DNA of 64,000 bases, taken from the sequence record PV112478.1. One strand, given 5' to 3'. This document shows positions 1,571 to 62,417 of this stretch, one piece after another (position 1 is the stretch's first letter; each line of letters starts with the position of its first letter). Below the pieces are notes generated by a model. The model was not told the origin of the DNA. It ran no database searches and was given only the letters and a program-made list of their open reading frames with translations. Made by a program: the position numbers and the translations under genes.

Positions 1571-3826
1571 ATGAGCACCAATTTTATATCTATGCCAAAT
1601 AGTCAATTCAAACTATCCGATGGAGCGAGGAACGCTAATTTCGGTAAATTGTACGTAGGTAAAGCCAATACCGACCCTACCGTTGCGGCTAATCAAATCC
1701 CGGTAACCGGTGTTGCTACCGACGGTACGAGTACTACGTTAACGCAACCAGTGAATCTGGACAGTCGGGGCTTTCCGGTGGACGCCTCGGGTAAAACCGT
1801 AACACTATCTGTAGACTCTCACTACAGTCTCGCTATATTCGATGCGTACGATAAGTTACAACAATCTGTCAGCGCAGTGGAAACAAAAGAAGTGAGCTCG
1901 TTCGCGGAGCTCAGATCACTCCCTGTACTTCGCGACGGACAGTCAGTAAAAGTTTTAGGTGTCGGCTATGGAGATTTCGTCGGTAAAAAGGGAACAGGCG
2001 TCGATGACGGTTTTACCATTGCTGCCGGGCCTGGTTATTACTGGCAACGCATTGATATTCCTTTTTACAGCGCTAAAAGTGGATCCAGTACGCTGCGGAG
2101 TATTCAAAATAAGCTTCGTGAGATTCCTTCAATATACGATTGGGATAGCGACAGTGCAAATGACGACTCGACGCGTTTTACGAAAGCACTCAATTCTAAC
2201 GCAGATAATATTTTCATTCCAAGTAATACGGAAATAGGGACACTGAAAATTGCGAATATTAACGTTACTCGCAATATTCACTTTTGGGGAACTGCCATTG
2301 CGGGTTACCGTCAAGTTGGCGCATCGCTCGTTATCCTCGACGGTGCCGACTATGGATTTAATTTCAGTGGGTCAGGTAATGGGACCACCGGAAACGGTAG
2401 CCGCTTGATTGGCGGAGGAATGACGGGGATTTCATTACTCGGTCAAACCACGGCGAATAAATCAGACTTTATACGAGTCAGTCATGCTTCCAGTTTAGAG
2501 TTCTCAAACGTATCCCTACGTCAGTCCGCTGGAGCGGGGTTTGTTCTACAGGACTTTATGGAAAGTAGAATTGTTAACTGCTACTTTAACAGTGTCGGCG
2601 GAGAAACTAAAAACGTCATTCATCTTGGCGATTACATGGACAGCGCACCTTGGAACGTTAATAACTTGCACATTGAAGGTTGCACTTTTGGCTCTTGCGG
2701 CGGATACTTAATTTATGCTTCAGAGAACGCCAATGCCGATCTCATTTGGATTAGTAGTAACAAATTCGAATGGGACAGTGATTCGCTTAACCCGAATACG
2801 ACAGATAAGTCAGTTATTTATTTAGGGAAGGTGGAGCGGGTTAATATTGATAATAATGGCTTTGTGTATTATTACCCGGCACACAGTCGTTACACGTCGA
2901 TACTTGAATTGAGCCAGAATGCTAACTACGGGGTACAGTTTAAAGGGAACAGTGCGTGGGGTTGCACGAATGCGAATTACTGGAAGGTTTCTGGCGGCTC
3001 ATTACTGGCTGCGAATAACCGCAGTAACGCCACAATGACAACTGTAGTAACAAGTCCGTATAGCCAAGATATCGAAGCACCTGCTATTCGTACGTCGACA
3101 GGTAATCGACCGACGTCGTACGCAGCAAAACCTTTCTATTCTGATTTTATTCCGGCACATAGACTTACCGGACCTAACGACAGTAACAACTTCGTGACTG
3201 ACCCAGATGCAACGGTTAATGGTACGTGTCAGCAAGCGACCGTAGGGCAGGAAATTCGTCGACTCTTGATCCCAAAAGACATGATGGTTTCCGGTAGGGT
3301 ATTAAAAGTCTCAGCGCGAGTGAAAAGTACGGATACGGTTACCGACGGGAATATTCAAATTGTCCTCGATGGAAATATCATCACTAACAATACCCACTCT
3401 TTAGTGACCAATTCCAATTTTTTAACGGTTCCTGCTAACAGTGGTTGGACTCAGGTAGATTGGTTTATCACGCCGACTTTATTGGGCTCCGGCGCTGGCT
3501 CAATAATATTTAAAAATGTCGGGACGAATACTTTTCTTTTTGACGGGGTTAGTATAAAGTACGCAGATTATTTCGATGTTACTGTACCGTGGACGCCAGG
3601 TACTATTGCGGCAAATACCATGGTTAACACAACGATTACGAGTAGTCGTTTCTCTGCGTTTGTAACCGGTGTCAGTGGCGTTCGGACTGACCAAAGTCTG
3701 GGTGGTGCATTTTCGTCTGCTTATTTTAATGCTGCGAATAATCAGCTAGTTATTCAGCTGCGTACATTTGAAAGTCAGGCTGCGACGTCGGCGACATCCT
3801 TCCGAGTAAGATTATTTTTGAAATAG
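1571..3826 (+). CDS. Tailspike / capsule depolymerase with P22-type head-binding domain and KP32 gp38-like beta-helix
   Basis: N-terminus GKLYVGKANTDPT..NQIPV...QPV.L matches the P22 tailspike head-binding domain. Core (ESRI..NVNNLHIE..DLIWI..NKFE) resembles KP32 gp38. RBS AGGAG upstream, hairpin terminator downstream. Confidence 0.88.
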   Translation: MSTNFISMPNSQFKLSDGARNANFGKLYVGKANTDPTVAANQIPVTGVATDGTSTTLTQPVNLDSRGFPVDASGKTVTLSVDSHYSLAIFDAYDKLQQSVSAVETKEVSSFAELRSLPVLRDGQSVKVLGVGYGDFVGKKGTGVDDGFTIAAGPGYYWQRIDIPFYSAKSGSSTLRSIQNKLREIPSIYDWDSDSANDDSTRFTKALNSNADNIFIPSNTEIGTLKIANINVTRNIHFWGTAIAGYRQVGASLVILDGADYGFNFSGSGNGTTGNGSRLIGGGMTGISLLGQTTANKSDFIRVSHASSLEFSNVSLRQSAGAGFVLQDFMESRIVNCYFNSVGGETKNVIHLGDYMDSAPWNVNNLHIEGCTFGSCGGYLIYASENANADLIWISSNKFEWDSDSLNPNTTDKSVIYLGKVERVNIDNNGFVYYYPAHSRYTSILELSQNANYGVQFKGNSAWGCTNANYWKVSGGSLLAANNRSNATMTTVVTSPYSQDIEAPAIRTSTGNRPTSYAAKPFYSDFIPAHRLTGPNDSNNFVTDPDATVNGTCQQATVGQEIRRLLIPKDMMVSGRVLKVSARVKSTDTVTDGNIQIVLDGNIITNNTHSLVTNSNFLTVPANSGWTQVDWFITPTLLGSGAGSIIFKNVGTNTFLFDGVSIKYADYFDVTVPWTPGTIAANTMVNTTITSSRFSAFVTGVSGVRTDQSLGGAFSSAYFNAANNQLVIQLRTFESQAATSATSFRVRLFLK

Positions 3827-12352: not shown

Positions 12353-12373
12353 GAGAGGGGGCGAACCCCTCTC
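12353..12373 (-). terminator. Intrinsic terminator closing the 17945-12383 operon
   Basis: GAGAGGGG-gcgaa-CCCCTCTC with U-tract on minus strand. Confidence 0.75.
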
Positions 12374-14147: not shown

Positions 14148-15122
14148 TCAGTCTTCCTTACTGCTCCCGGAAACTACGCTAGTACGAATCCACTTTATTT
14201 TCAGTTGGCGATTAGGGCTATTACGAGCACCGGTCCAATAGCCGTGCCAGTGTGCCCGTCTGATATGCGCTGCTCGCCCGGTCGTCTTCTGTCCTTTCTT
14301 TCGCTTCTCGATTTCTTCGAGGTAATCGACCCCTACCGGAAACTTACGGTGTGCGTTCAGGAACCGTAGGCTATAGTGTTTACCCGACCGTTTCATCTGG
14401 GTAAGTCGAAAGGTATTACGGAAGTCAGCGCGGTCTTGCAACTCGTATTCCTGCGCAACAAACAATGCCACGTTGAGTAACTTAGTGTACGTTTCACGGT
14501 ACCCGTCACGCATTAGAATATCGACAGCTTTAACCGTATCGATATTGTATTCTTTTGCAGCCCGTACAATAGTAGGGTCAGAAGCAATGACCTCCTCTAG
14601 CGTCAAACCTTCATCGAACGGGAAGAATAACGTTTGCGGGAAGCCGTTATCGTTATATGGGTAAACGATCGTCAGTCCCTCTTTCCCGCTCCAGTGTGTA
14701 ACCGTAGAAAGGAAAATCCCTTCGATGATCGGTTCCTCCGGAAGAGGGTGTTTGATAGGACAAGCTGAAAGGTCGACGTACCCTGTCCAATGAGGAATGG
14801 TTTTCAAAACACTGAGCGGCAATTTACCGTTGAATTCAGAGTCCAACACATCAGGTAATAATTCAGCTGGAATCTGATATTCAGGTTTAGTAATTTGCCA
14901 GCAATACGCCATGCTCATATGGCAAAAGATTTCACGATAATACGGGTTAGTGAAATCGATATTATTGTTCCAGCTACGATTCTCTCCCCATATTTCGATA
15001 GGGTAGAAATACGGTGGAATTTCCCCTTTCTTCTCCGTGAGGATCCGATTGAAGAAATCCTTCGCGTCCCATGCCCGTAAACGGGGTAAGAGCATTTTCT
15101 CCATTGTCTCCAGTATTTTCAT
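14148..15122 (-). CDS. AcrVA2/FinQ-family protein
   Basis: 324 aa; C-terminal AHIRRAHWHGYWTG...KIKW versus recalled AcrVA2 PHIRRGHWHGYWQG...RVRW; also W..T...YQ and LP.S.L...P.W..YVD.S. Confidence 0.8.
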   Translation of the reverse strand: MKILETMEKMLLPRLRAWDAKDFFNRILTEKKGEIPPYFYPIEIWGENRSWNNNIDFTNPYYREIFCHMSMAYCWQITKPEYQIPAELLPDVLDSEFNGKLPLSVLKTIPHWTGYVDLSACPIKHPLPEEPIIEGIFLSTVTHWSGKEGLTIVYPYNDNGFPQTLFFPFDEGLTLEEVIASDPTIVRAAKEYNIDTVKAVDILMRDGYRETYTKLLNVALFVAQEYELQDRADFRNTFRLTQMKRSGKHYSLRFLNAHRKFPVGVDYLEEIEKRKKGQKTTGRAAHIRRAHWHGYWTGARNSPNRQLKIKWIRTSVVSGSSKED

Positions 15123-15425
15123 TCAGTCACCCTCAGACTCACGTGTTCCCAGATTCCCGTTTCCGTTAAAGACGATTTGATAGTCTAACGTACCTTTACT
15201 GTTCAGCTCCTCTAAATGCTCAGAGACAGCCTCGTTATAGGGCTTAAGTAAGTCGTTCTTACCCAGCGCCTCTAGCGTCATGAAAATGATCAGGGTACTT
15301 TGATCAATCGGTGTAATGTTCTTATTTGTCAAGATCTCAATAACGCGCGGGATATTCGCCCTGAGTTTCTCTAAGTCTTCATTCACCCGTAATCCCCTTA
15401 TAAAACAATTCCATCCCTTTCTCAA
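15123..15425 (-). CDS. Hypothetical protein
   Basis: Tiles; real start probably downstream (GTG VNEDL) to remove overlap. Confidence 0.6.
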   Translation of the reverse strand: MRKGWNCFIRGLRVNEDLEKLRANIPRVIEILTNKNITPIDQSTLIIFMTLEALGKNDLLKPYNEAVSEHLEELNSKGTLDYQIVFNGNGNLGTRESEGD

Positions 15426-18042: not shown

Positions 18043-18074
18043 AAAAGAAAGAGGGAATGACCCCTCTTTCTTTT
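18043..18074 (-). terminator. Intrinsic terminator after AAA ATPase
   Basis: AAAAGAAAGAGGG-aatgac-CCCTCTTTCTTTT. Confidence 0.8.
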
Positions 18075-18081
18075 ATTAGCC

Positions 18082-19398
18082 TTAGTTCAGAGAACGCCCT
18101 GTTTGAACGACGACTTCGCCTTCTTTCAGGTAGATTTTCTTGCGCGGCTTACGCAGCGCCGTTGCCAGCGGGATATCGCTCTTAGGAACGACATCAAACT
18201 TCGGTAAACCCGCCGCCGCGCGAGCTTCAACGGCCTCCATCGGGGTCAGCATACGGAAGTGTAACGGCTCGCCAAGATAGTGACGGCCATCGCGCATCAG
18301 TGCCGGTTCGATTTTCGATTTGTCGGTCAGGTTAGTCGTGATAATGATTTTACGCGTGGTGGCGCTCCCTACGCCGTCGGTTTCGTTCAGCAGTTCTGAC
18401 ATCATCGTGTTACCGTCAGCACGCGGACGTAAGAGGATATCCCCATCTTCCACAATCACGATTGGGAAGGTAGGATCTTTACGGGTTTTCGCGCCGTGGC
18501 TGTTTGGCAGCGTCAGCATATTACGGGTATTTTCAAAATGCGAACGGTCTTTGAAAAGTTCATAACGCGCATTTTCACCACTGGAGATTTCAACCCTTTC
18601 CATTTTGTCGTCGCTGAACGCGAAGATCTTAGAGATGAATTCTGGGTTTTCGAGGACCTCAGTTTTCTTCGCGTAGATCGCGAAAAGGTTCAGCGCCACG
18701 CAGGTAGCGGAAATGGCGGTCGATTTCCCGGTGCCCGGTTCGCCCATGAGGATCAGAACTGATTCATCAGACTGAATAAAGTCTTCGATGAGCGCTTCCA
18801 CACCACCGTTCAGGAACGGATAGAACTCCTTCTTCGTTTCGCCGCTATGGCGCATAACTCTGGGTTCAAGGTGTGTCATTTCACCCATTGGCGTTTTCCG
18901 AATAACGACTTCAGAATAATAAAATTCCTCTTTCGTTTCGTCAGTACGGTTATCGATTTTGATATTTTCTTGGATCTGAATCAACAGATCGTCGTAGATA
19001 TCTTTCGCCATCATACCTTCGATAGAGAGGTTAGACCTGATGTCGCTTTGAATACGAATGCAGGCGATCGGACGATTGTATTTATCCAGTCCGATGAACT
19101 GGTCATCGTCGTGCTGGAAGAAGCGATGTTTTTCCAGGAACGCAGTTAACCACTGCGTGGATTCGAAGTAGTATTTATTCTGATCGAACATTCGATCGGT
19201 ATCGATGTTGAAGATAGGGAGTCGATTTGCAGTCAGGAAATGACGTACCATTTTATTGACACGAATTTCTTCCTCGTTATTGCCTACGAAACGTGCGTAG
19301 CTCCCGTAAGCTTCGCCGAACGATTCGAAGATATCATTCAGTGATTTAATAGGTGCGTTATCAGAGAGAGATCCAGAGAAAAAAGCGTGCTTGTCCAT
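18082..19398 (-). CDS. AAA+ ATPase with large N-terminal domain
   Basis: Walker A GEPGTGKST, Walker B IVIVEDGD, LLNETDG, sensor-1 ITTN, Arg finger ALMRDGR. Confidence 0.9.
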   Translation of the reverse strand: MDKHAFFSGSLSDNAPIKSLNDIFESFGEAYGSYARFVGNNEEEIRVNKMVRHFLTANRLPIFNIDTDRMFDQNKYYFESTQWLTAFLEKHRFFQHDDDQFIGLDKYNRPIACIRIQSDIRSNLSIEGMMAKDIYDDLLIQIQENIKIDNRTDETKEEFYYSEVVIRKTPMGEMTHLEPRVMRHSGETKKEFYPFLNGGVEALIEDFIQSDESVLILMGEPGTGKSTAISATCVALNLFAIYAKKTEVLENPEFISKIFAFSDDKMERVEISSGENARYELFKDRSHFENTRNMLTLPNSHGAKTRKDPTFPIVIVEDGDILLRPRADGNTMMSELLNETDGVGSATTRKIIITTNLTDKSKIEPALMRDGRHYLGEPLHFRMLTPMEAVEARAAAGLPKFDVVPKSDIPLATALRKPRKKIYLKEGEVVVQTGRSLN

Positions 19399-23658: not shown

Positions 23659-25038
23659 TTAACTTACAGCTTTTAAGACGTTATAACTTACTGCTTCGAC
23701 AGGTTTAGTGACGTCGTACGTCCGTAGCGCGTTTTCATAGGCTACCGGGTCATGTTTGTTCAGCATGAAAAGCGCTTGAACAGATGCACCGGGTAAAGGA
23801 GAGAAAGGAAGGTTATTACTAGGTTCCGTATCAGGGAATGCCATTTTGAAGAACTGACGAATTTCTTTATCGCCTAATACTTCTACTTCAGCCCTGACGT
23901 CTATTCTCCCGTCCCGCAGCAGCGCATCGTCAAGTTTCTCAGGGCGGTTAGTCGTCAGGAAAACGATAACATCATTCAACCGCAAGACGCCGTCTAACGC
24001 GTTGAGGAAATCTGACAAGCTACCGTTTAGGTACTCGTCCATTGCTTTATCGTCAGAACTTTGTTCTTCAACGACGAAAGGGGTATTTTTGAGTTCTTCT
24101 GGGTTTTCCGGTTTGTTTCCCTCTTTTAAGTCAATGATAACCTTTTCTTTACTCCGCGCTTTCGTGAACGAATACGTGTCAATATCCTCGATAATCACAA
24201 CCCCGCCAGCTGCTCGTTGGAAAAGCGCTTGGTATTGTAATCCACCGGCGGGTTTGAGGATATGAATATCGCGCCCTAACGCCGCCGCTAATGCCGAAAT
24301 CAAACTGCTTTTTCCGGTGCCCGGTAAACCGTATAACAACACCGTGAACTTATAAGCCAGTCCTCGTGATTCGTACCAGTCTTTACTCTTATTAAAATCG
24401 AAGATAGGGTCGATTAACTCGCGCTGGACTTTATCCGTAACGACTATGGTTTTAAGGTCTCTTTTCTTCAGTCGGCACAAATAATTCCAACTGTCGGTAG
24501 TATTGACAAATGTCCGTATGTTGTCTTTACCCGTATCTTTCAGCATAAACTCATCCATCAGGTTTAAGATAGGTTTATGACTGCGACCGAATTTACTGAT
24601 ACTAAGACGGTATTTCGAATTACTCGCAGCGTTAGCGTCGATTTCCGTGATAGAGAAAACAAACACAGTGCCCTTATGGAGAAAGAAATGTGAGCCCGCA
24701 CCAGGTCCCACTGCGCCGGACTCTCCGTTCGCGTCGCCATCAATCGTTATCGTCCTACTCCAATGGAACCAACTATTCTTAGCAAACCATTTCAGGAATG
24801 CCCCGTATTGTTCGGAGTTATAATTACTCCAGTTGGTTCCTGAGGTGTTAAAAACCAAACTGGTAACAAACTGACGTTTGACCCATTGTGCTACCGCCTT
24901 GGGCGTTTTGATTAACCCCCAACCAATCGCCCCTGATACCGCGATAGAGCTCGCGGCGACAATCGCATTCTGTGCCATGGGGTAGTCTTTAAAGTTAGAC
25001 AAAATATGGTCGTAAAATGACATTAGTTGTTCGAGCAT
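23659..25038 (-). CDS. BCS1-like membrane-anchored AAA+ ATPase
   Basis: N-terminal TM, PGAGSHFF (BCS1_N-like), WYESRGLAYK..LLYGLPGTGKSSL, IIEDID, LSDFLNALDG, TTNRPEKLDDALLRDGRID. Confidence 0.88.
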   Translation of the reverse strand: MLEQLMSFYDHILSNFKDYPMAQNAIVAASSIAVSGAIGWGLIKTPKAVAQWVKRQFVTSLVFNTSGTNWSNYNSEQYGAFLKWFAKNSWFHWSRTITIDGDANGESGAVGPGAGSHFFLHKGTVFVFSITEIDANAASNSKYRLSISKFGRSHKPILNLMDEFMLKDTGKDNIRTFVNTTDSWNYLCRLKKRDLKTIVVTDKVQRELIDPIFDFNKSKDWYESRGLAYKFTVLLYGLPGTGKSSLISALAAALGRDIHILKPAGGLQYQALFQRAAGGVVIIEDIDTYSFTKARSKEKVIIDLKEGNKPENPEELKNTPFVVEEQSSDDKAMDEYLNGSLSDFLNALDGVLRLNDVIVFLTTNRPEKLDDALLRDGRIDVRAEVEVLGDKEIRQFFKMAFPDTEPSNNLPFSPLPGASVQALFMLNKHDPVAYENALRTYDVTKPVEAVSYNVLKAVS

Positions 25039-29038: not shown

Positions 29039-29353
29039 TTATTTTTGCCTGATACGGAGTTCGAGTTTAATCGATAAATCGTCACCGCCAGTTTCATCAA
29101 ATGAGAGACTCCGCCAGATTCCTATTTCTCCGCCGTACGCGTAGAAATAAATCTCCCTTTCGAAAATAACGAAGAGCTTCTCGATAATCGCCGTTTCTTC
29201 ATTCGTAAACGCAAAGGACGGAGAAAGCGACTCCGAACGATGTTTAGGTAGCCTCTGTAACAATTCTACGGAATCGTTAAACTCCGTTGAAGTAACACCG
29301 GAGTGACGAGCGTGACCAACCACAAGACACGTTTCTAAAACGCACGTTGTCAT
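29039..29353 (-). CDS. Hypothetical protein
   Basis: 4-nt overlap with thyA stop. Confidence 0.6.
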   Translation of the reverse strand: MTTCVLETCLVVGHARHSGVTSTEFNDSVELLQRLPKHRSESLSPSFAFTNEETAIIEKLFVIFEREIYFYAYGGEIGIWRSLSFDETGGDDLSIKLELRIRQK

Positions 29354-30729
29354 ACCGACACCTGTAATTTAATGGCCGGGTGATGCTTGTACTCGGTGAA
29401 GACGAAATCTTCATAGGTGAGTTCAAACAACCCTTTCTTCGGCACCTCTGAGTTATAGTAGTGCTCAGAGCGAACGTAGCACTCAACCGGTTTGTAAGGC
29501 TCGCGAGTTAATTGTAACTTCGCTTCCTCTAACTGATTGTTGTAGATATGGACGTTAGTCAGATTACCGACCAGCTTATTGGGCGCCATACCGAGCTCAT
29601 GAGCAAATGACAGCAACATGAAGGCGTAGAAAGCTTGGTTAAAGGGCTCGCCGGTCATTGTGTCACAGCTCCGCATACTGTATTTCAAACTCAGCCACTG
29701 CGTCGGTACATGGTTCTCCGTCAACCATTCCGCTTTACGCTCAGGGGACATTTTCGGCTGGTCACAATGTTCTTCGCTGTAGTAGTCAGACATGTGGTCT
29801 TCCCAGAGATCCTGGAAGTACGGGTTAGCGTTGTTCCTGCACCATTTTAACCGCTCGTTCAACGTCATCTCTTCTACGTAGAACTCTACCAGGAAATGAC
29901 ACGGGGTAAGGCATGGTTTACCCTCCACAATATTTTCCTGCGGCGTAACCTTAACGGTCTTAGTGCGTGGTACACCATGACTTGCTAAGAACTCTTCGCA
30001 GTTATCGGTCTTACCATGATATTCCAGGCGCGGCCAGAAAATAGCATAAAGGTCCGGACTGTGGGTTTTTAAATGTTCCCACATCTCGTCACTACTGAGA
30101 GTAACTTCTTTCGTTTCTTCCGGCATCCAAAGCGGGTTCCACGCCGAGATCAGGATACGACGCGATTCTGGATTGTTCCGTAGGAGATCGAGCGCATACG
30201 CGATTTGGTCAACGCCCTTCTTCTCCAATGGATTCTCAGAGAAATTTCGCCATGCTGACCCGTAAGGGGCATTAAGATCACCCGCTTTGTTCACGGTGAC
30301 CTGGCGAGTACGTGGTACGCCTTTTTCATCTAACCAACGATGACCGTCTTCAACAGGCCGGATGGAGATCCCTTTACTGTAAAACTCGATGTGAGCTTCT
30401 TTGTTGTTCTCTTCAAGCCACTTCAGACGTTCGTAGTTTTCCAGAGGTACTTCTTTCACTACGTCAGCTTCTAAACGCCACGGATCCCAGAACTTGACAT
30501 TATTCTCCACCATGGTATCGAGGTGGAGTTCCCCGTTTAACATTGCTTTGTACTCAAACCACGCAGATTTACGCGGAACGAACTTCGTTGTGAGCAGAGG
30601 GAATTCCCCGGTCGAAAGGTCGTACTTCAGTTTCGCATCGAAAATAGAAATCGTCCCCGTTCCCGTCCTGTCTCCTCGCTGACGACCGGTTTCGATAATT
30701 TCACGTAGTAAATCGAGATACTGTTTCAC
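29350..30729 (-). CDS. thyA: Thymidylate synthase (ThyA) with three large insertions
   Basis: DRTGTGT, FPLLTTK, PYG..WR, DQI, RRIL.SAWN, L.PCH, RSCD..G.PFN, HIY.NQ. Confidence 0.95.
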   Translation of the reverse strand: MKQYLDLLREIIETGRQRGDRTGTGTISIFDAKLKYDLSTGEFPLLTTKFVPRKSAWFEYKAMLNGELHLDTMVENNVKFWDPWRLEADVVKEVPLENYERLKWLEENNKEAHIEFYSKGISIRPVEDGHRWLDEKGVPRTRQVTVNKAGDLNAPYGSAWRNFSENPLEKKGVDQIAYALDLLRNNPESRRILISAWNPLWMPEETKEVTLSSDEMWEHLKTHSPDLYAIFWPRLEYHGKTDNCEEFLASHGVPRTKTVKVTPQENIVEGKPCLTPCHFLVEFYVEEMTLNERLKWCRNNANPYFQDLWEDHMSDYYSEEHCDQPKMSPERKAEWLTENHVPTQWLSLKYSMRSCDTMTGEPFNQAFYAFMLLSFAHELGMAPNKLVGNLTNVHIYNNQLEEAKLQLTREPYKPVECYVRSEHYYNSEVPKKGLFELTYEDFVFTEYKHHPAIKLQVSV

Positions 30730-50893: not shown

Positions 50894-52963
50894 TTAAGCG
50901 GTTTCGTAATCAGTAATCTGACGACTGGTGTAAATGAACCGGTAAGGGTTAGGTTTGCTGTACTGTGCTACCGCACCGATCGGCGTATTGTAGAGATGAA
51001 TCTCGCCGCTACCGTACGTTTGGAAGCTGGACTTCACGCCGTTGTCGTAACTACAGCTGTAGAAATAAGACGCCCCTCTACCGTAAACGTTAGAACCTAC
51101 CGTATCTTTCCCGACGACATACAATGCACCTTTAATGCTGTCGGTGCTTTGGTTGCCGCTGGCGATCGTTTCGAGGTGAGCCACGAAGGTATTCAGTCCG
51201 TACTCTTCGATAGGGTAACCGTCTACATTTCGGTAAGTCGATTTGAATCGAATCCCGATTACACCCGGCCCTACTAACGACCCACGTTTTTGTCCATTAC
51301 CCGAACCGAAGTGATTCTCGGATACGCAACTGACTTCGAGGAACGTGCCTTGTACCCCCAACGGAATTGTCTGACGGTCACTGCCGTGATAGGTACCGTA
51401 AGTCCCGCCGTTACTGAAATGGCAATCTTGAGAGAAGACCTCAGCCCCGTAGTTGTTCAGACACGCCGTTGAACAGGTTCCGGTAACCTCCACGCCCTTC
51501 AACCATAAAGACGGCTTCGCGTTGATCGCCACAGACTCAGCACCCAAACCAATGTCGGTATCAGAGACTTTCACATTGGAGACGTAAATTGTACTGTTCC
51601 CAGTGAAATTCAGTCCCGTGTTCCTCACAACGACTTTAACGTTACTGTCAGGTTTACGGCTATTCGACGTCTGAACAATAATCGCAGTGGACGTCACGCA
51701 GTAGCTTCCTACTGTGGCCACTACCGCAGCAGGACCGTCTACTTCCACTAAGCGTTTAGGTAATCCGTTACTGTCTAACGTACCGTAATCAAAGACACCG
51801 GCGATACTTAGACCCGTTGCTAAATATTGATAGACAACGTTAGAGTCGGAGTAAAGCGACCAGTTAGTGATCCCCAGATCGCCCGTAAAGGTTGGTACGG
51901 TGCCACCGGTGCCATAGATACCGATCTTACGGTCATTCACTGTACGTTGAACGAAGAACGGTTTAGAGCCCTTCACGACGATACTGGTGGCAATAGGCGA
52001 TTTATCAATTGCAGCGTTAAGGGTTTTCAGTGGGTTAGCTTCACTTCCGTCATTCCCGTCTGCGCCGAGATCAGAGTCAACGTAGTAGACCGTCCCGTAG
52101 GGGAAGTACCATTCGCTCAGATCAAAGTCGGTTGAGAACCGCATCAGTCCCTGGGCCAACGCCCCCTCGTAAGGGAAGACCGCAGCGAGTGGATCAAAAA
52201 CCGCAGGGAGTTTAGGAACTACCGGCAAACAGTTATTTGCACTGTCGTAACTGGTCTCGTAAGAAGGGCCGGTCAGTTCCAGTAATTGCCCAGCGCGGAA
52301 ACGAGCCACTGTATTACCCGATTGTAGCGAACTTTGAGTCATTGACAACGACCCGTCATTCCCTAAAATAACCCCAGTATTCGAGGTAGTCGGTGAGAAA
52401 CTCCCTTGCTTCCCAACCACAAAGTTTTCGCCGTTAACTCGGCTTTTCCCGGAGAGCGCAAAGGTTTTACCGTCTGACTGATAAAGTTGGTACGGGGTAC
52501 GGAGCCAATCACGAATCGTGGTTTCCTGACCGAAATAAACTTCGAGTGTCCCGATGTACATCAATGAAGTGGCAACGGTTTTCAGTGTAAAGACACCGAT
52601 CGTGGTCGTCAACGCAGTGGGGATGAAGACTTCCTGTTTGATATCGGTCATGTCAAGCTGTAGACCGTACAACGTATTCAGACGGGCAACGATATCTTCG
52701 GCCGTGAATATTCCGGCAGTAGACATGAACACCACGGGCTCGGTCAGGACTTTATTGAGATTGACCCGGTTGTAATCAAAGACTGCTGAATCACGATAGT
52801 CACCTGCATCGGTCGCTACCGCGGTGATACGCGTGTTAAAATTCCCGGTCGTCAGGGCAGTGAGGTTGATGAAATCCAAATCGCTTTCTTTAAAAAAGGC
52901 GTCGTACTGCGTGTTCAGCTGACGAACCAGAAGCGCTTTACTTTTTAACGAGAAATCTGTCAT
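50894..52963 (-). CDS. Virion tail fibre / depolymerase-like protein (phiKZ-type N-terminal anchor plus beta-helix)
   Basis: NTRIT..Y.R.NL..L..IV..LN..YGL.L..DI N-terminus; YYVDSDLGADGNDGSEANPLKTL beta-helix entry motif. Confidence 0.75.
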   Translation of the reverse strand: MTDFSLKSKALLVRQLNTQYDAFFKESDLDFINLTALTTGNFNTRITAVATDAGDYRDSAVFDYNRVNLNKVLTEPVVFMSTAGIFTAEDIVARLNTLYGLQLDMTDIKQEVFIPTALTTTIGVFTLKTVATSLMYIGTLEVYFGQETTIRDWLRTPYQLYQSDGKTFALSGKSRVNGENFVVGKQGSFSPTTSNTGVILGNDGSLSMTQSSLQSGNTVARFRAGQLLELTGPSYETSYDSANNCLPVVPKLPAVFDPLAAVFPYEGALAQGLMRFSTDFDLSEWYFPYGTVYYVDSDLGADGNDGSEANPLKTLNAAIDKSPIATSIVVKGSKPFFVQRTVNDRKIGIYGTGGTVPTFTGDLGITNWSLYSDSNVVYQYLATGLSIAGVFDYGTLDSNGLPKRLVEVDGPAAVVATVGSYCVTSTAIIVQTSNSRKPDSNVKVVVRNTGLNFTGNSTIYVSNVKVSDTDIGLGAESVAINAKPSLWLKGVEVTGTCSTACLNNYGAEVFSQDCHFSNGGTYGTYHGSDRQTIPLGVQGTFLEVSCVSENHFGSGNGQKRGSLVGPGVIGIRFKSTYRNVDGYPIEEYGLNTFVAHLETIASGNQSTDSIKGALYVVGKDTVGSNVYGRGASYFYSCSYDNGVKSSFQTYGSGEIHLYNTPIGAVAQYSKPNPYRFIYTSRQITDYETA

Positions 52964-52979: not shown

Positions 52980-55040
52980 TTAAGCGGTATAAATGAATTG
53001 ATACGGGGTCAGAAGCTGCGTGGCCGGTTTAGTGCCAATGTCGGTATCGAACAGGGCGATTTTCCCCACTCCGTTTGGAATGAACGAGAACGCCGAGTTA
53101 TCCCCTTTACAACTCCAGTACTGAGCAGATGCAACGGTCGTCGCATTCGCACCGGTGGTAAAGTGCGCCAGATTACTCAACGTGTTCGTCACGTTATTGG
53201 ACTGGCAAGCGATATTCACTGAGAACGTTCCTTCACCGGAGTCTTTGACGTGAGAACCGTCACAATGGCTGTATACGGAGTTCAGACGCAGGATTGTCCC
53301 GTATGCAGAGAGACCGGAGGCCGCAGAGGTATGGTTACTATCAAAACCGCAGTAGCTGACTGTTGCTCTATTCTCCACGATCCAATACTTACTGTTCATC
53401 GCAGGTAATACACGGTCACTGTTGTAACTGAATCCGCCACTGAAACCAAATTGTGCAACACAGTCTTGGTGTGCAACGTTATAACCGTAGCTTCCGAAGG
53501 ATGGGCCCTTGAACGTCCACCCGAACCGGCAGGCGTTCATGTACAGATACCCGTAAGTTCTCGGTGTGGTCATGTCCGCGATAAAGCCATTGTAGGAGAG
53601 ATCAAAATTACATTTCTCCATGAACACGTTACCCGCATCGGCGACTGACCCTGAGAGCGTTTTTGCAATCAGGTAAACGTTATTGTCAGGCTTGCGGCTA
53701 TCAGTTAATCGAACGTAGACCCGATTATTGGTGTTGTCGATGTAATAAGAGTGCGGGGTGTTCGCACAGTCGGTAATCGAGGTCTTAGCGGTCATCCTTC
53801 CAAACCCGGCATCGCTATATACCGTTTTGTCTACCACGGCAGCAATGTCACTGATTTTACTGTACCAGGTGTTGGCATCGTACCCTGACCAATCGGTACT
53901 TTGACGGGTGGAGGTAAAGGTAGGGTTAACATCCCCGTAACCAATAATATCGACTGTACGTTGGCGAATGGTTTGTGTCCAGCCAGAATCGGCGTCGTAG
54001 TAAAGATCTGCGTAACCTTTTACGCGAATAACCCTGGCAGCAGGTAGTCTGTTTATCGCTCGACGGAAGGTTTTGAACGCGGTCGCTGCGGTCGAACCGT
54101 CATTGGTGTCGGAACCGTCTTTGACATCAACGAAGACCACTGTACCTGTACCGGCACGTTTACTGGTGACGTCGAAGCCCAGAGAGTAGGTCAATGTCCC
54201 CGCATTCAACGACGCTGTTAACCCTAACGTTTCAGGGATCACTGCAAGTTGAGACGGTAATGTTGGTACTTTAGGAAGTAAGTTACCCGAGGCATCGTAA
54301 GACGTTTCGCCGTTGACCCCTAAGGTCTCCAGCAGACGACCGTTGCGGAAACGTCCTATCAACGTGTTCTTGCTGTTTGGGTGATAGTCGATTGCCGGGA
54401 TAATTTTCCCAGTGGGGGAAAGATAAAGCGCAGTTAATCCGGAACGTTGCGAAAGGGTACGACTGACGTCAACGATGTCTTTCCCAGCCAGTTTCCAGTG
54501 ACCGCCTAAAAAGCTGAGGGTGTTATAGTCACTTCCTACGGTAAATTGTAACGCATTGAAATACTGGTAAACCGCCTCTTGTTTGCCGAGATAGATAGTT
54601 ACGCTACCGGTGTACACGAGGTGGTTATCTACCACGCTGACTGTGATTTTTCTGACGCCAGTGGCAATGTCGTCGGGGCGATACGGGCCATCTACAAGAT
54701 CAGTGGTCGTTAGGGCGAGTTGGTATTTCTCGTTCAGGTACGGAATTAAATCAACGATACGAGAAAGGTTATAGTCTTCCAGTTGACAATAAGGTCGGGC
54801 CAATAACGTTTTAAAGCTCAGGCGATTATACTGTAATGTTACACCGAGTGATTGCAGGGACGAGCCGTTAGTGACGTTAATCGTCGTATTCAAACCGTTA
54901 ACAACAGTGGTGTTAACTGCGGGTGTACCTAACGAGATTGACGAAGTCGTGTACATTGTCCCGTTTGCTTCGTTAATCAGATCAACGGCAATCTGTTTTG
55001 GGGTCTGTTTTAAATCAACCATTTTCAATTCATCCCTCAT
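52980..55040 (-). CDS. Virion tail fibre / depolymerase-like protein, tandem paralog
   Basis: Same architecture; VFVDVKDGSDTNDGSTAATAFKTF. Confidence 0.75.
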   Translation of the reverse strand: MRDELKMVDLKQTPKQIAVDLINEANGTMYTTSSISLGTPAVNTTVVNGLNTTINVTNGSSLQSLGVTLQYNRLSFKTLLARPYCQLEDYNLSRIVDLIPYLNEKYQLALTTTDLVDGPYRPDDIATGVRKITVSVVDNHLVYTGSVTIYLGKQEAVYQYFNALQFTVGSDYNTLSFLGGHWKLAGKDIVDVSRTLSQRSGLTALYLSPTGKIIPAIDYHPNSKNTLIGRFRNGRLLETLGVNGETSYDASGNLLPKVPTLPSQLAVIPETLGLTASLNAGTLTYSLGFDVTSKRAGTGTVVFVDVKDGSDTNDGSTAATAFKTFRRAINRLPAARVIRVKGYADLYYDADSGWTQTIRQRTVDIIGYGDVNPTFTSTRQSTDWSGYDANTWYSKISDIAAVVDKTVYSDAGFGRMTAKTSITDCANTPHSYYIDNTNNRVYVRLTDSRKPDNNVYLIAKTLSGSVADAGNVFMEKCNFDLSYNGFIADMTTPRTYGYLYMNACRFGWTFKGPSFGSYGYNVAHQDCVAQFGFSGGFSYNSDRVLPAMNSKYWIVENRATVSYCGFDSNHTSAASGLSAYGTILRLNSVYSHCDGSHVKDSGEGTFSVNIACQSNNVTNTLSNLAHFTTGANATTVASAQYWSCKGDNSAFSFIPNGVGKIALFDTDIGTKPATQLLTPYQFIYTA

Positions 55041-56671: not shown

Positions 56672-58450
56672 TTAAACAGGGGTTAATTCTTCCAGTCTGA
56701 CTTCTATAGACCGGGTTGTCGCTGTTGGGGCGGTTCCAAACTCAATGTTAAATGATGTAACTGATTTACCGGCTAACAACGGGCGAACGGTCGTTTGGTA
56801 ATCGGGCAATATTGAAACAATTCTATAATTTGTGTTCAGAACGGTCGATGGTAAATTAAGCGAGAAAACAGTGGTTGTACCGTCACCTGTGATGCTATAG
56901 GTCTTAGTGATTTCTGTTACATAGCCAATGTTACCAGAAATTAAAAGATTTGTTTTAGTGGCACCACCGTAGTTTATTTTCCCATCACCGGCCGAATCAG
57001 AGAAATGATTATTTTTAATCATTGAGTCAGCTATAGTTCCGCTGGGACCGATTGAAATATCATAACCACTGTTGTTTAAAAAAGTGTTATTTAAAATATC
57101 GATTTGGTAACAAGACGAAAGGTTAGTTTGGATATCGATTCCTCTCCCTGTACTCGTCTTAGTTGTTCCAGTTTCATTGTCTAAATAGTCAGCTTTAAAA
57201 GAACCTATAATAAAACAATTTATAATTTTTAAACCTACGAAACCAGAACAATATATCCCAGACCCACAATTGTCAATGACAACATTACTGAATTCACAAT
57301 ATGTTAAGGAGCCTAACGAGCCAATCCCAGACCGTTTACAATTTTTAGAGGTGAAATTGGTTATAGAACATTTTACAATATTATTTTCGCCTAAATACGC
57401 CCCGTCTTGGCAGTTATCGGCGGTACCGCCATCCAGTTTCGCATTATAGCATCCGTTGAAATCTACGCCATTGTCAACGCAGTTTTTAACGTACGGGTTG
57501 CTAACAAGATGGTCTTGACATTTCCCGTTGGCAATCCCGATGAAACCTGCTGTATTGACTGCATCCGAGATGGACTTACATCCTACAGTTCGACCTAAAG
57601 AATCGGCCCTAAACTTAATCCCGTTAGAATCTACATTCTCAATAATATTTTCTGAAGAAACATGCTCAATACAATTTGTGACATATTGCCCACAGGACGT
57701 CTCAACGGCCCCACCTTTGATTTGATGAATATAATTTTTTCTACAAAATGTGCGGGTGGTATTCTCGAAGTATGCGCCATTAGCTACAAAGTTAACGACC
57801 TCAATATCTTCCAGACCCGCCCCAGTGACTCCGACAGCAGAAAATGCGAAATGTTTACTTGACGAAGTTAAATCACCGGCGATCTTCCCTTTCTTATTCA
57901 CAGACTTAAGAACAGAGTAGTTAGAGGCAATGAACATGTGTCCTGTGCTGTTTACCTTTTTACTTACTGTTACTCCAGGTAAAACGATCAACGTAATATT
58001 TTCTGGTATAACAAAACTGTCGACAATGACATTGATATCTATTTCGACAGTATTATTAATTTTCGCCGCCTTGGAACAAAGAACTGATAAAACCGAGGTG
58101 ATGTCAGTATTCGGCGTGGCATAGTCTGAAACTTTAGGAGGGAGCTTATTAATAGAAGAAAGAACGCTGGTTTGATTTAATGCTAAGTTAATATTGAAAC
58201 TCCCAGTGGAAGTGACTAGATTAGCACTCCCGTCTGGATTTAAGCTAATGGAATTAAAAATACCACTAGCATTGCCTTTATCCCAAGTTGTTTCGGTATC
58301 TGGGTGGAATAAAATTTTACTTTGATTAATACTGTTACCTGACTCTAAATACCCAACCTCCGCTTCTGAAATACCATAAATTCTTGCCAGACTATTTTTG
58401 TTTGTTATCTCAGCAGAGCTGCCGCCAGGTTGAACTAAACGATTTAACAT
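56672..58450 (-). CDS. Tailspike with CBA120 TSP1/TSP3-like N-terminal docking domain and beta-helix
   Basis: QP.GS...TNK.SLAR.YG..EV.Y matches the Ackermannviridae TSP docking domain; pectin-lyase-like N/C/G repeats. Confidence 0.85.
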   Translation of the reverse strand: MLNRLVQPGGSSAEITNKNSLARIYGISEAEVGYLESGNSINQSKILFHPDTETTWDKGNASGIFNSISLNPDGSANLVTSTGSFNINLALNQTSVLSSINKLPPKVSDYATPNTDITSVLSVLCSKAAKINNTVEIDINVIVDSFVIPENITLIVLPGVTVSKKVNSTGHMFIASNYSVLKSVNKKGKIAGDLTSSSKHFAFSAVGVTGAGLEDIEVVNFVANGAYFENTTRTFCRKNYIHQIKGGAVETSCGQYVTNCIEHVSSENIIENVDSNGIKFRADSLGRTVGCKSISDAVNTAGFIGIANGKCQDHLVSNPYVKNCVDNGVDFNGCYNAKLDGGTADNCQDGAYLGENNIVKCSITNFTSKNCKRSGIGSLGSLTYCEFSNVVIDNCGSGIYCSGFVGLKIINCFIIGSFKADYLDNETGTTKTSTGRGIDIQTNLSSCYQIDILNNTFLNNSGYDISIGPSGTIADSMIKNNHFSDSAGDGKINYGGATKTNLLISGNIGYVTEITKTYSITGDGTTTVFSLNLPSTVLNTNYRIVSILPDYQTTVRPLLAGKSVTSFNIEFGTAPTATTRSIEVRLEELTPV

Positions 58451-58502: not shown

Positions 58503-61500
58503 TTACGAATGCCCTAACGCATCCACCAAAGACTGAAGTTTCTCGCGCAGTCTATCCGTTTCCCTGCGCTGGTAAGCCGCCTCTAGCGCTAAACACTCTT
58601 CCATACGTATCATCCAAACTTCTCCCTCCTCTACGGCGGGTTGTTCAGGGATTGCTGGGGAAAGTTCAACACCATCTTTGTCTAACACCGCTGGGACAGC
58701 AGGTACAGCTGCTTTTGCATCCCATCTGTTATAAATGAGAATCCCGTAATCGGTTGCATCCATTCCTGCCGCTTCAAATGCTTCTTTGATATCTTGAGCG
58801 ACAATACCGAAGTGAACCCGGGCATTAGCTGACCCTTTCTCGGCTATTGCTGTTTTAAGTTTCCATTGACTAAACTTGACGGTTCCCCAGACATCGAGAA
58901 CTTCATCAGCGATACTGTTTATTTCGTCTTTATAAGTCCGATCCGAAATCACCGTTACAGCATTTTGAGAGAAAACATCTTTAAACGTAGACGATGCTGA
59001 ACCTAACGTGTATGTTGCAGTCGTCGTCGGTAAAAAGTTACCTGTCGTCCAGAGATTACCCCCTGCATTAATCGTGATCCCGGATGCGCTAGTTGCTGCG
59101 ATATATCCTGTCGCGGTGGTTCCGCCGTTGTAGTAGAAATTAAGATATTTAACACCTACACCGCCAGAATACCCAACGTCGGTGGCGTATATTGAACGCC
59201 AAGCATTCGCTACGCCAGTGCCGCCGGAAACAACGACAGATTTAGCGGTAACCGTATTCCCGTTCCAATCGTTACTGAATGAATAGGCGCTAAGGTTACT
59301 TTGGTCAATAGCTAAGGTGTCCCCTACTGCCCCTACAACGCCGTATAGCACGTAATTCCCGCTAGCAGTACCGTCCGCGTTCATCACACGCTTCAGTATT
59401 TTCACCGAACCTGTCGTACCTGTACTTGAACCGCTCACAATCCAAATTGGTATACCGACCGCAACATACGGAAGGTTAGCGGCGGGGACACTAATTGTCG
59501 TGAATCCCGCAGTGCCATCTACCGCTGTCACAGTTGCACTAAAAGCGGTTTGAAACGCTGATTCTAATGTGACGCCGTCGGCTATCATTCTGAACTGCGT
59601 ACCAAAACCTGATGTCACTGACGGTGTCACGAGACTACCGGTTTGTGATAGTGTAATTTGGCTCCATGGCGCGAGCATGTCTCCTTTGTAGAAAAGTCCT
59701 CCTCCTAAACTACCGTTCGCCCCCGAGTAATCACTGACTGTACTGATAACACTTGTCGCTGGTGATTCAGGGAAATAATTCCCGCAACCACCCGGGAACA
59801 TCGGGATACCACCGTGATAAGCTTCAATGGCCTTCAAAATTATCGGTGTGGTAGCCGGGACTGTGATGACGATGTTCGCATTACGACCGTAGGTAAAAAT
59901 CCCGTCCCAAGCAGATAGGCGTTTGTTGTAGAGTTGTAGCATTTTATAGCCATTGCCGTAATCAATGACTTTTTCAGCGAAGCTTTTATAAATTGCTTCT
60001 TTGTCACTACCTTCTTGAGCAGCGGCGGTGATCCATGCTACTATTTGTCTAGGGTCGAAATTACCTGTTAAATCTTTGATCCAAATACAGACTGTGTTAC
60101 GCGGAGAGGGGTTCTGCCATGGGATAAAGACAGTACCGCTGTTAATCTGTAAACCATACGGGTTAAACATCTCTTTTGCGTAGGGGCGATAACGCAAAGA
60201 TTCCCAATCGGTTCCTGGTAACAGATATAAGTTATATGGTCCGTATTTGAAGTCGAAGCCGGTATGTCGAAACGCACCGAGATCGCGACTTGGGCTGTTT
60301 ATACTGTAGCTTGCTTGGCCATTAGGGAGGTCAAATTGTTGTAACCCCGCCGGCAGTGTGTATTGCCCGTTATCGCTAATGGTACCGAAACATCCACTTT
60401 CAAAGACAATTTGATTATAATTGGCAAAGTCATCCTTGTAAGTGCTCACCATGTCAATCTTCAAACCCTGTAACCTGGACGCATTACCGCTGAAGGTGTA
60501 GGCTGATATCATGAAATTATTGTAGCACCATTCGGTATACAATGCACTAAATGTGTGGTTCCTCGCGGACGTGTAGACAATAGCCCGGCCAGGGTTAAAA
60601 TTCTTCGCTGCGGAGGCGGAAATATACGACCCGTGACATTGAAACCCTGTCCCCGTTACCACTGCCAAATAATCGGGTATTAACCCCGAAACGTTTTTTG
60701 TCATGTCTTGCCACGCTAACGCGTTGGCAATAATGCCACCGGAGAATTTAGACCAATCAGTTGAGTTACGGTAGACCCCGCGACGACCATTGTAGAATCG
60801 GCAGTTTTCGCAGTTCATTCCGTAGAAGTTACCGAATCGTGTTGATTGTGTCTCAGAAAGGAAATCACAAACGTATTGATAATCTAAAACATTATCGTCG
60901 AACTTGTTACCGTAAACCGTTTTATAATTTGTTTCCGCTAATTGAGCGGGTACTGCTACGGCGCACCAGTTAAAATTGCGAATTTCAACATTCTTCAGGG
61001 TAATATATTCTGGGTTTAATATTAGAATCCCAACGCCGGAAGAACAGTCAACCGGCAATTGTTCAACCACATGATCACCGTAAAACGTTCCGCCGTTGAC
61101 TGTGACTTTTTGGCAGCTAACACTACCCCAATAAGCTTTCTTACCGATCGCTTCCCATTTTGCCTTAATTTCGTTGTAACCATGCACAAATCCATTTAAA
61201 CGTTTGCCGGTGGCCGAAAAACTGTAAGATTTACCGGCGTAGACAAAAATAGTCGCTCCGTTAAGATTGTAGGTCACTTGGTTATAAACGCTGTGTGCTT
61301 CTTTACCAATGCGATAGATATTAGGCGGTAACTCCACCGTAATATTTTTATACCCGGTATAAGTCGAGTAATTGTTTGACGGCGAAACAGGTAAAGGTAG
61401 CTGGTAGAAAATACCGTTGAGTGCTTGCCCCAAACAAACGAAATCATCTGTGGTCTTATCAGTGGCTTGTGCTACAGTGACCGCTTTAGCACCGTTAGCC

Positions 61501-62417
61501 AAAGGGTTAATGGTGCCAGAGTTAATATCGATTAGATATTCATCGCCATTAGCGTTATAAACCTTGCCTTCTGTAATAATGTGTTTACCGGCACGAGAGG
61601 CATTGTTCACACCGGTGGCATTCCATTTTCCGTCACCGCCGTCACCAGCGGCATAAAAGCCACGGGTAGAAAAACTATTTACTGCGGCTGTTTGAGTTAA
61701 AATATCGATTGTACACGATACCCATTCTCCCAAACCGGTACTAATTTTATTTAGGTTGCTTTGAACTGTCCCGCCCCCAGTAACACCAATATTACTCGCG
61801 CCAGTAGGACCGGTATATGTTGCCAAGAAAGCTTCGTTGACCTTCTCAACGTCATCGGACCCAAAACAAATTGCTACTACGGTTTGATTGGCTTTAACTG
61901 GCGTGGCAAGTGTGAAAGTGAGACCCGAACTTTCAAAACCTACGTCTTTAAACTGACGCAAACCGTCCACGTAAACTTCCTGAACTGAGATATTCCCAGT
62001 CAGCGGAACAGTGAAGGTTTGCTCTCCACCATTACTCAGTCCACCGTTATAAACCCACTGAACAATCGCACCCTTATCCTTCAGAGCTTTATTCAACAGC
62101 GCGTAAGTACCGTAGGTGACTTGTTCGCTATTAGCATTCAACAACGGAGTTGCGCCGCCGGCACTATTAACCCAACCTTGAACATGTTCTTTAGTATCGT
62201 CAGTGTAAACAAAGAACACATCACCGGGAACCGTTGCCGAAACACCCGCCACAGTACTCAAGTAGGCGTTCTCAAACATGATACTTTCACGTAACGCACG
62301 GAGCGTTGTTTTATACGTGTCATTTTCTTCTTTAACTTGAGCAATGGGAATAAACCCATTCTCAGAGGCTACCGACAAAGCCGGTAATTCGGTAATCTTT
62401 AAGCTAGACTTATCCAT
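58503..62417 (-). CDS. Large tailspike: anchor, XD-like domain, beta-helix and C-terminal intramolecular chaperone (peptidase S74)
   Basis: WVYNGG..NGGE..VYVDGLRQ (XD-like), GASNIGV.GGGTVQ neck, SDRTYKDEI..HFGIVAQ..IRMEECL chaperone. Confidence 0.88.
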   Translation of the reverse strand: MDKSSLKITELPALSVASENGFIPIAQVKEENDTYKTTLRALRESIMFENAYLSTVAGVSATVPGDVFFVYTDDTKEHVQGWVNSAGGATPLLNANSEQVTYGTYALLNKALKDKGAIVQWVYNGGLSNGGEQTFTVPLTGNISVQEVYVDGLRQFKDVGFESSGLTFTLATPVKANQTVVAICFGSDDVEKVNEAFLATYTGPTGASNIGVTGGGTVQSNLNKISTGLGEWVSCTIDILTQTAAVNSFSTRGFYAAGDGGDGKWNATGVNNASRAGKHIITEGKVYNANGDEYLIDINSGTINPLANGAKAVTVAQATDKTTDDFVCLGQALNGIFYQLPLPVSPSNNYSTYTGYKNITVELPPNIYRIGKEAHSVYNQVTYNLNGATIFVYAGKSYSFSATGKRLNGFVHGYNEIKAKWEAIGKKAYWGSVSCQKVTVNGGTFYGDHVVEQLPVDCSSGVGILILNPEYITLKNVEIRNFNWCAVAVPAQLAETNYKTVYGNKFDDNVLDYQYVCDFLSETQSTRFGNFYGMNCENCRFYNGRRGVYRNSTDWSKFSGGIIANALAWQDMTKNVSGLIPDYLAVVTGTGFQCHGSYISASAAKNFNPGRAIVYTSARNHTFSALYTEWCYNNFMISAYTFSGNASRLQGLKIDMVSTYKDDFANYNQIVFESGCFGTISDNGQYTLPAGLQQFDLPNGQASYSINSPSRDLGAFRHTGFDFKYGPYNLYLLPGTDWESLRYRPYAKEMFNPYGLQINSGTVFIPWQNPSPRNTVCIWIKDLTGNFDPRQIVAWITAAAQEGSDKEAIYKSFAEKVIDYGNGYKMLQLYNKRLSAWDGIFTYGRNANIVITVPATTPIILKAIEAYHGGIPMFPGGCGNYFPESPATSVISTVSDYSGANGSLGGGLFYKGDMLAPWSQITLSQTGSLVTPSVTSGFGTQFRMIADGVTLESAFQTAFSATVTAVDGTAGFTTISVPAANLPYVAVGIPIWIVSGSSTGTTGSVKILKRVMNADGTASGNYVLYGVVGAVGDTLAIDQSNLSAYSFSNDWNGNTVTAKSVVVSGGTGVANAWRSIYATDVGYSGGVGVKYLNFYYNGGTTATGYIAATSASGITINAGGNLWTTGNFLPTTTATYTLGSASSTFKDVFSQNAVTVISDRTYKDEINSIADEVLDVWGTVKFSQWKLKTAIAEKGSANARVHFGIVAQDIKEAFEAAGMDATDYGILIYNRWDAKAAVPAVPAVLDKDGVELSPAIPEQPAVEEGEVWMIRMEECLALEAAYQRRETDRLREKLQSLVDALGHS

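Follow-up and report, generated by a model that had tools for sequence, protein, structure and literature searches.

The window analyzed here, a stretch of 64,000 nucleotides, is 100% identical to Klebsiella phage LPKP23 (PV112478.1, 300,747 bp), base 62001 of that record being base 1 of the window. On the minus strand at positions 14148–15122 lies a single ATG-to-stop open reading frame (ORF) of 324 codons, evident from the ORF list and its translation, which is also the longest possible reading of its frame. A preliminary description of this DNA had given exactly these coordinates, to which the ORF list adds the strand. In GenBank the ORF is JNLGKPLP_00116 (XPA09922.1), annotated as a 'hypothetical protein', and we assign it as an AcrVA2/FinQ-family coding sequence (324 aa plus stop codon) on the basis of the ORF list, the GenBank record, profile and Foldseek searches, PHROG 6160 and dN/dS values. 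Its ATG directly abuts the stop codon of the upstream gene (15123–15125), and a Shine–Dalgarno-like GAGGG, read from the sequence 8 nt upstream of the ATG (15130–15134, minus strand), falls inside the end of that gene. The gene is present as a single copy in the phage record, with no second copy at E 1e-5, and has a GC content of 0.466 compared with 0.444 for the window.

The 3.5-kb region around the gene is found in 9 further records at 96–97% nucleotide identity. Six of these nine are titled 'Serratia phage' and yet state Klebsiella as host. Records MN871447–MN871453 comprise six near-identical genomes named 'Serratia phage Kp...', all deposited without annotation and with Klebsiella pneumoniae as the stated host.

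Within the phage genome, the gene belongs to a series of approximately 14 small co-oriented genes of unknown function, flanked by two strong terminator-like hairpins that were located by a terminator scan. The first (18043–18074, minus strand) has a 14-bp stem followed by a T-run, lies after an AAA-ATPase gene, and delimits the putative transcription unit on its upstream side; in the related phage genome FBKp24, a terminator is annotated at the equivalent place. The second (12353–12373, minus strand) has an 8-bp stem with 6 GC pairs and a T-run, and is the probable end of the unit. Pfam and PHROG scans of ten neighboring genes returned one AAA ATPase and otherwise families of unknown function, and no AcrVA1-like partner was recognized among the genes adjoining the AcrVA2-like gene. 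The window contains two AAA-ATPase genes on the minus strand, 4 kb apart (18082–19398 and 23659–25038). The second additionally bears an N-terminal BCS1 domain, and of three related jumbo phages examined, two have the first as a conserved landmark upstream of the locus.

With respect to conservation, the AcrVA2-like gene was compared across FBKp24 and two metagenomic jumbo-phage contigs of 264 kb and 144 kb, in which its product is 85%, 52% and 50% identical to that of the window, respectively. A DUF8224 gene lies downstream of it in all three (71%, 38% and 40% identity), and the AAA ATPase lies upstream in FBKp24 (58%) and in the 144-kb contig (41%), with no match in the 264-kb contig. Most of the small neighbors are less conserved in these same three genomes, with identities mostly of 30–60% and many genes having no counterpart. 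Across the four diverged jumbo-phage genomes, the gene keeps a fixed position and is better conserved than the majority of the genes around it. Tested via the 563-aa DUF8224 neighbor, this synteny does not extend to the Erwinia phages. The gene is also under strong purifying selection, with dN/dS values of 0.06 against FBKp24 (85% amino-acid identity, with dS saturated) and 0.11 against KpLz-2_45 (97% identity), and on the strength of these two values we regard it as functional. Seven of the nine amino-acid replacements that separate the window protein from its KpLz-2_45 counterpart fall within the first 86 residues.

The relationship of this protein to AcrVA2 is apparent from sequence and structure searches. 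When the single 324-aa sequence was compared with all PDB chains using phmmer, AcrVA2 (7ci1_A, 323 aa) was the only match, at E 2.1e-7 and in two colinear stretches. A profile of 9 sequences raised this to E 1.1e-33 against AcrVA2 (7CI1), aligning residues 56–320 of the window protein with residues 62–320 over 265 residues. The AlphaFold model of the window protein (pLDDT 81.8, pTM 0.84) led to the same place: in a Foldseek search of the PDB, 7ci1 and 7ci2 were alone below E 1e-3 (E 4e-12 to 8e-12, TM 0.52–0.58), the next match being at E 0.2, and the structural alignment to AcrVA2 gave 16–17% identity, TM ~0.55 and an rmsd of ~7 Å. On this model, the protein is predicted to have the AcrVA2 fold, with the three-part architecture of 7CI1. 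PHROG 6160, a family of unknown function, matches it at E 4e-36, and PF26125, which bears the family name 'AcrVA2-like', is precomputed on a 97%-identical relative as well as on the 52% and 50% orthologues. Scans of the window protein and its relatives with NCBIfam and with a Pfam-A set that does not contain PF26125 returned nothing significant.

The second characterized relative, FinQ, is also recovered. The finQ product of an IncFII plasmid (361 aa) matches by BLASTP at E 4e-18, with 28% identity over residues 66–312, and by hhalign with a probability of 99.6%, and it shares the C-terminal motif with the window protein. FinQ differs in exceeding the window protein by 37 aa, in having its first 80 residues and much of its central part unaligned, and in being borne by IncI/IncF plasmids, where it acts on F transfer genes, whereas the window gene resides in a phage genome. 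The likeness to AcrVA2 extends to length (324 versus 323 aa for the PDB chain), fold and colinearity over 265 residues, and is offset by an identity of only ~16–25%, by residues 1–55, which cannot be aligned, and by the carrier, which is a Moraxella prophage for AcrVA2 and a virulent 300-kb Klebsiella phage for the window protein. Taken together, these results place the window protein solidly in the AcrVA2/FinQ family (Pfam PF26125, AcrVA2-like).

The preliminary description had proposed this membership from motifs and had suggested HMM and Foldseek comparison with AcrVA2 and FinQ as a check; the AcrVA2 profile and Foldseek matches, the hhalign match to FinQ and the finQ-annotated relatives all bear the proposal out, and the profile alignment over residues 56–320 carries the homology well beyond the short C-terminal motif. 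The motifs it listed are present and align with AcrVA2 residues in HMMER alignments (W75/T78/Y82-Q83, L101-P102...P110/W112/Y115-V-D...S119 and H286-I-R-R-A-H-W-H-G-Y-W). Its wording that they run along the whole protein holds for the ~82% of the length that aligns to AcrVA2 and fails for residues 1–55.

AcrVA2 has been studied by mutagenesis: mutants at H286, R288 or H291 retain binding and lose down-regulation, and mutation of W79 or D89 has a moderate effect (Marino et al., bioRxiv 10.1101/2022.11.29.518452). The numbering of the AcrVA2 PDB chain is offset by one from that used by Marino et al., and once this offset is applied, the window protein has H286, R288 and H291 opposite the three essential residues, at the very same numbers. 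W79 of AcrVA2 aligns with W75 and is conserved, whereas D89 aligns with P85, so that the Asp is not kept. Among 150 distant cluster representatives, W75, H286, R288 and H291 were each found in 100%; P102, P110, G135, H293, G298 and W311 were common to 99%, and Y115, G264 and W292 to 97%. The relative P0002, which is 83% identical to the window protein, has different residues at G294 and W296 (within the columns of query residues 294–297) and keeps H286, R288 and H291. The residues of the window protein at these two positions are common to 74% and 93% of distant family members, respectively, and the FBKp24 version is without P0002's changes.

The distribution of this conservation along the chain is modular. 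Segment HMMs were built from the Klebsiella-phage clade and scored on 155 family members. The C-terminal module (aa 271–324; 14151–14312, minus strand) was matched in 155 of the 155; it corresponds to the part of AcrVA2 in which the essential residues lie, and contains the motif H-x-R-R-x-H-W-H-G-Y-W-x-G at aa 286–298 (14229–14267, minus strand). A first module at aa 61–125 (14748–14942, minus strand), which contains W75, Y82, P102, P110, W112 and Y115, was matched in 147 of 155. The variable middle between the two (aa 126–270; 14313–14747, minus strand), a β-sheet with helices in the AlphaFold model, was matched in only two, both of them Erwinia jumbo-phage versions (E ~1e-4 to 1e-3), and in the 150 distant representatives the 20-residue blocks lying between the conserved modules show 6–18% identity. 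The N-terminal helical region (aa 1–60; 14943–15122, minus strand) is likewise clade-specific and unaligned to AcrVA2 and FinQ, whose alignments begin at residues 56 and 66 of the window protein, respectively; its segment HMM also matched two of 155, namely Erwinia phage RisingSun and one cluster representative (E ~1e-4 to 1e-3). Judged from these alignments, the window protein combines two family-wide modules with two clade-specific parts, a picture that matches the observation of Marino et al. that AcrVA2 and FinQ are alike in their C-terminal domain and diverge towards the N-terminus.

In terms of distribution, the family is very large. An exhaustive profile search returned 4,523 clusters (at 50% identity) at E ≤ 1e-3, 900 of them at E ≤ 1e-30, and at least 203 viral stretches in IMG/VR, on contigs of 4 to 307 kb, contain a member. 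The single sequence matches 75 records of deposited phages, mostly jumbo phages that infect Erwinia, Dickeya and Klebsiella; Leptospira, Pasteurella and Acinetobacter contribute a few records, and Pseudomonas jumbo phages are absent from the tblastn matches. Structural neighbors among viral proteins are all uncharacterized. A tblastn search of 72,556 plasmids found a relative in 539 records, 485 of which are conjugative, and the top matches are annotated 'protein finQ'.

The nearest relatives outside the Klebsiella-phage clade come from Erwinia and Dickeya jumbo phages (Alexandravirus, Yoloswagvirus, Risingsunvirus and Salmondvirus). The Alexandravirus protein aligns over residues 22–323 with 29% identity (E 9e-28), and the Erwinia jumbo-phage versions show weak similarity to the window protein in its variable N-terminal and middle parts. 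The neighborhoods of these homologues differ from the Klebsiella-phage locus and their functions are uncharacterized. From these sequence comparisons, Enterobacterales jumbo phages appear to carry a distinct branch of the AcrVA2/FinQ family. The RisingSun homologue, gp126 (L090:2935–3936), is annotated as a 'putative mycothiosynthase', which present evidence does not support, and lies directly after genes annotated as acetyltransferase, exonuclease and Cor superinfection exclusion. In a Dickeya phage (JA13_060/061; L089:2860–4484), the homologue is followed by a (p)ppGpp synthetase/hydrolase-like gene, the stop of the one overlapping the start of the other.

What such a protein might do is best considered in light of its two studied relatives. 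AcrVA2 originates from a Moraxella bovoculi prophage (Marino et al. 2018; 2026, Nature 654:771); to our knowledge, it is so far the sole bacterial protein seen to recognize a nascent chain and to have the mRNA encoding that chain destroyed. FinQ, described as a 361-aa fertility inhibitor, was first proposed to act on transcription termination. It has since been recognized as an AcrVA2 homologue that lowers the mRNA of F transfer genes (bioRxiv 10.1101/2022.11.29.518452). For AcrVA2 itself, a review's summary of the 2026 Nature paper (PMC13728456) describes a C-terminal part that associates with ribosomes and polysomes, with cleavage being carried out by a cellular enzyme. The signature described for the cas12a transcript is loss of its 3' part while its 5' end is kept. 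What the preliminary description said of AcrVA2 and FinQ agrees with the preprint of Marino et al. and with this summary.

Building from these precedents, we consider that the gene probably encodes a functional AcrVA2/FinQ member that destroys, co-translationally, the mRNA of one protein other than Cas12a, the target being made after the onset of infection. The conserved C-terminal module (aa 271–324) would, as the AcrVA2 work suggests, dock on translating ribosomes, and the rest of the protein, including the clade-specific aa 1–60 and 126–270, would recognize the N-terminus of one specific protein as it emerges. Recruitment of a cellular RNase would follow, and the mRNA of the target would be destroyed before its translation ends. 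Because blocking biogenesis spares proteins that are already present, the target would be one synthesized during infection, whether an induced host factor, the protein of a competing element or a product of the phage itself. Nascent-chain-directed mRNA decay is a reasonable extrapolation from AcrVA2 for the window protein, although it would carry the mechanism over ~16–25% identity in a family whose experimentally studied members are AcrVA2 and, in part, FinQ. The replacement of D89 by P85, as read from the alignment, would count against it.

The target can be narrowed to some extent. CRISPR surveys of K. pneumoniae report types I-E, I-F and IV-A only, with type V absent (PMC11792477), and for this reason Cas12a is an unlikely target. 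The preliminary description had held that Klebsiella generally lacks Cas12a and that the target should be another protein; the surveys agree on the first point, and the second is a reasonable expectation given the absence of type V from the host. The related phage phiKp24 has been reported to encode tubulin and a nucleus-shell protein, and with a nucleus shell of this type the phage DNA would already be shielded from DNA-targeting nucleases. The further proposal that an early gene silences a host defense or conjugation factor found no such footing: sigma-70-like promoter sites were not enriched (15 found versus 16.6 expected) and cannot date the expression of the gene, and the neighbors, PADLOC and domain fusions gave no pointer to a target. 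Specifically, no defense-system model was matched by PADLOC, longer family members (407–574 aa) scanned for fused domains yielded none that was informative, and papers on phiKp24/FBKp24 offer nothing on the gene in terms of expression, proteomics or anti-CRISPR activity. More tentatively, and with doubt outweighing confidence, the Klebsiella/Erwinia jumbo-phage branch may have a nascent-chain specificity of its own, directed against a conserved Enterobacterales protein made after infection, such as an inducible defense or stress factor.

The same mechanism could also serve a conflict between mobile elements. In an unlikely but serious alternative, the protein would act much as FinQ does, and its target would be a de novo protein of a co-resident plasmid or of a co-infecting or superinfecting phage. 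The finQ-annotated proteins are closer to it in pairwise comparison than AcrVA2 is (70.5 bits, E 4e-18, versus 33.8 bits), FinQ is known to lower F transfer gene mRNA (bioRxiv 10.1101/2022.11.29.518452), and the plasmids that bear a relative are conjugative in 485 of 539 cases. Moreover, a blocker of biogenesis would work best against proteins made once the blocker is present, and the RisingSun homologue lies three genes downstream of the gene annotated as Cor superinfection exclusion. Against this, FinQ has no recognizable counterparts to the variable segments of the window protein, and plasmid transfer is of no evident interest to a virulent jumbo phage.

Similarly improbable, in our estimate, is a housekeeping role, in which the protein would silence a class of phage mRNAs as a temporal switch, or an abundant host mRNA as part of shut-off, rather than an immune gene. 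The conserved, syntenic pattern described above is unlike that of patchy, fast-evolving anti-defense genes, and would fit a housekeeping function in phage development equally well. The gene occupies the same locus in four diverged genomes, its identities of 85%, 52% and 50% standing against neighbors that are mostly at 30–60% or have no match; it is under strong purifying selection, it occurs once per genome, and its GC content, close to that of the window, indicates that it is not a recent import. This unusually high conservation relative to its neighbors gives the housekeeping role real weight. Nonetheless, members of the family are spread unevenly among plasmids, prophages and both small and large phages, as is typical of accessory conflict genes, and Pseudomonas jumbo phages are absent from the tblastn matches.

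It is considerably less probable that a homologous fold has been put to a different activity, with the protein being a stoichiometric binder or a transcription-termination factor that does not bring about translation-coupled decay. The low identity and loose superposition with AcrVA2 (16–17%, TM ~0.55, rmsd ~7 Å) would leave room for this, as would the loss of D89 and the fact that the AcrVA2 mechanism is itself only partly resolved. The residues that AcrVA2 requires for mRNA decay and not for binding are, however, invariant throughout the family and present in the window protein, which suggests that the shared activity is the one these residues serve. Finally, a true anti-Cas12a protein is highly improbable: the family name and the retained W79 equivalent are all that speak for it, against hosts in which K. 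pneumoniae surveys report I-E, I-F and IV-A only (PMC11792477), a family whose members mostly occur without Cas12a (bioRxiv 10.1101/2022.11.29.518452), and N-terminal and middle parts that are unrelated in sequence to their AcrVA2 counterparts.

With regard to novelty, the preliminary description had called the proposed anti-defense specificity previously undescribed, which overstates the case given the homologues and targets discussed by Marino et al., the report of Al-Shayeb et al. 2020 and the existence of PF26125. Plasmids and megaphages are already on record as carrying approximately 1,800 AcrVA2 homologues, most of which occur without Cas12a, and other targets have been proposed for them (bioRxiv 10.1101/2022.11.29.518452); AcrVA2-like proteins in huge phages were noted by Al-Shayeb et al. 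2020, and a Shewanella phage AcrVA2 homologue was described in 2024. The gene is accordingly a new, previously unannotated member of a known family, and introduces no new principle beyond Marino et al. The present analysis adds the distinct Enterobacterales jumbo-phage branch, the map of modular conservation and the evidence of strong constraint. In a very large family (4,523 clusters) with Cas12a as its one known target and F transfer genes as a suspected second, a well-conserved member in culturable Klebsiella and Erwinia jumbo phages is a practical place to seek another target, and such a target would help to show how the variable parts set specificity. If the Klebsiella/Erwinia jumbo-phage branch does have a nascent-chain specificity of its own, aimed at a conserved Enterobacterales protein made after infection, this would be the second specificity known for silencing mRNA co-translationally, and the first from a virulent, probably nucleus-forming phage.

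Several other genes in the window merit brief mention. The 459-aa thymidylate synthase ORF at 29350–30729 (minus strand) matches Pfam and PHROG families in two stretches (approximately aa 1–202 and 344–459), and the ~140 residues between them match no family and may represent either an intein-like element or an inserted domain. At 50894–52963 and 52980–55040 (minus strand) lie adjacent paralogues of ~688 aa, both matching phrog_30606 and each with an N-terminal virion-structural domain; the middle of the second paralogue also matches hydrolase and tail-fiber families. Tail-spike and tail-fiber genes are found at 1571–3826 (plus strand), 56672–58450 (minus strand) and 58503–62417 (minus strand), and the 1304-aa tail ORF has a C-terminal Peptidase_S74 chaperone domain. 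These tail-spike and tail-fiber genes fit the many depolymerase-type fibers described for phiKp24.
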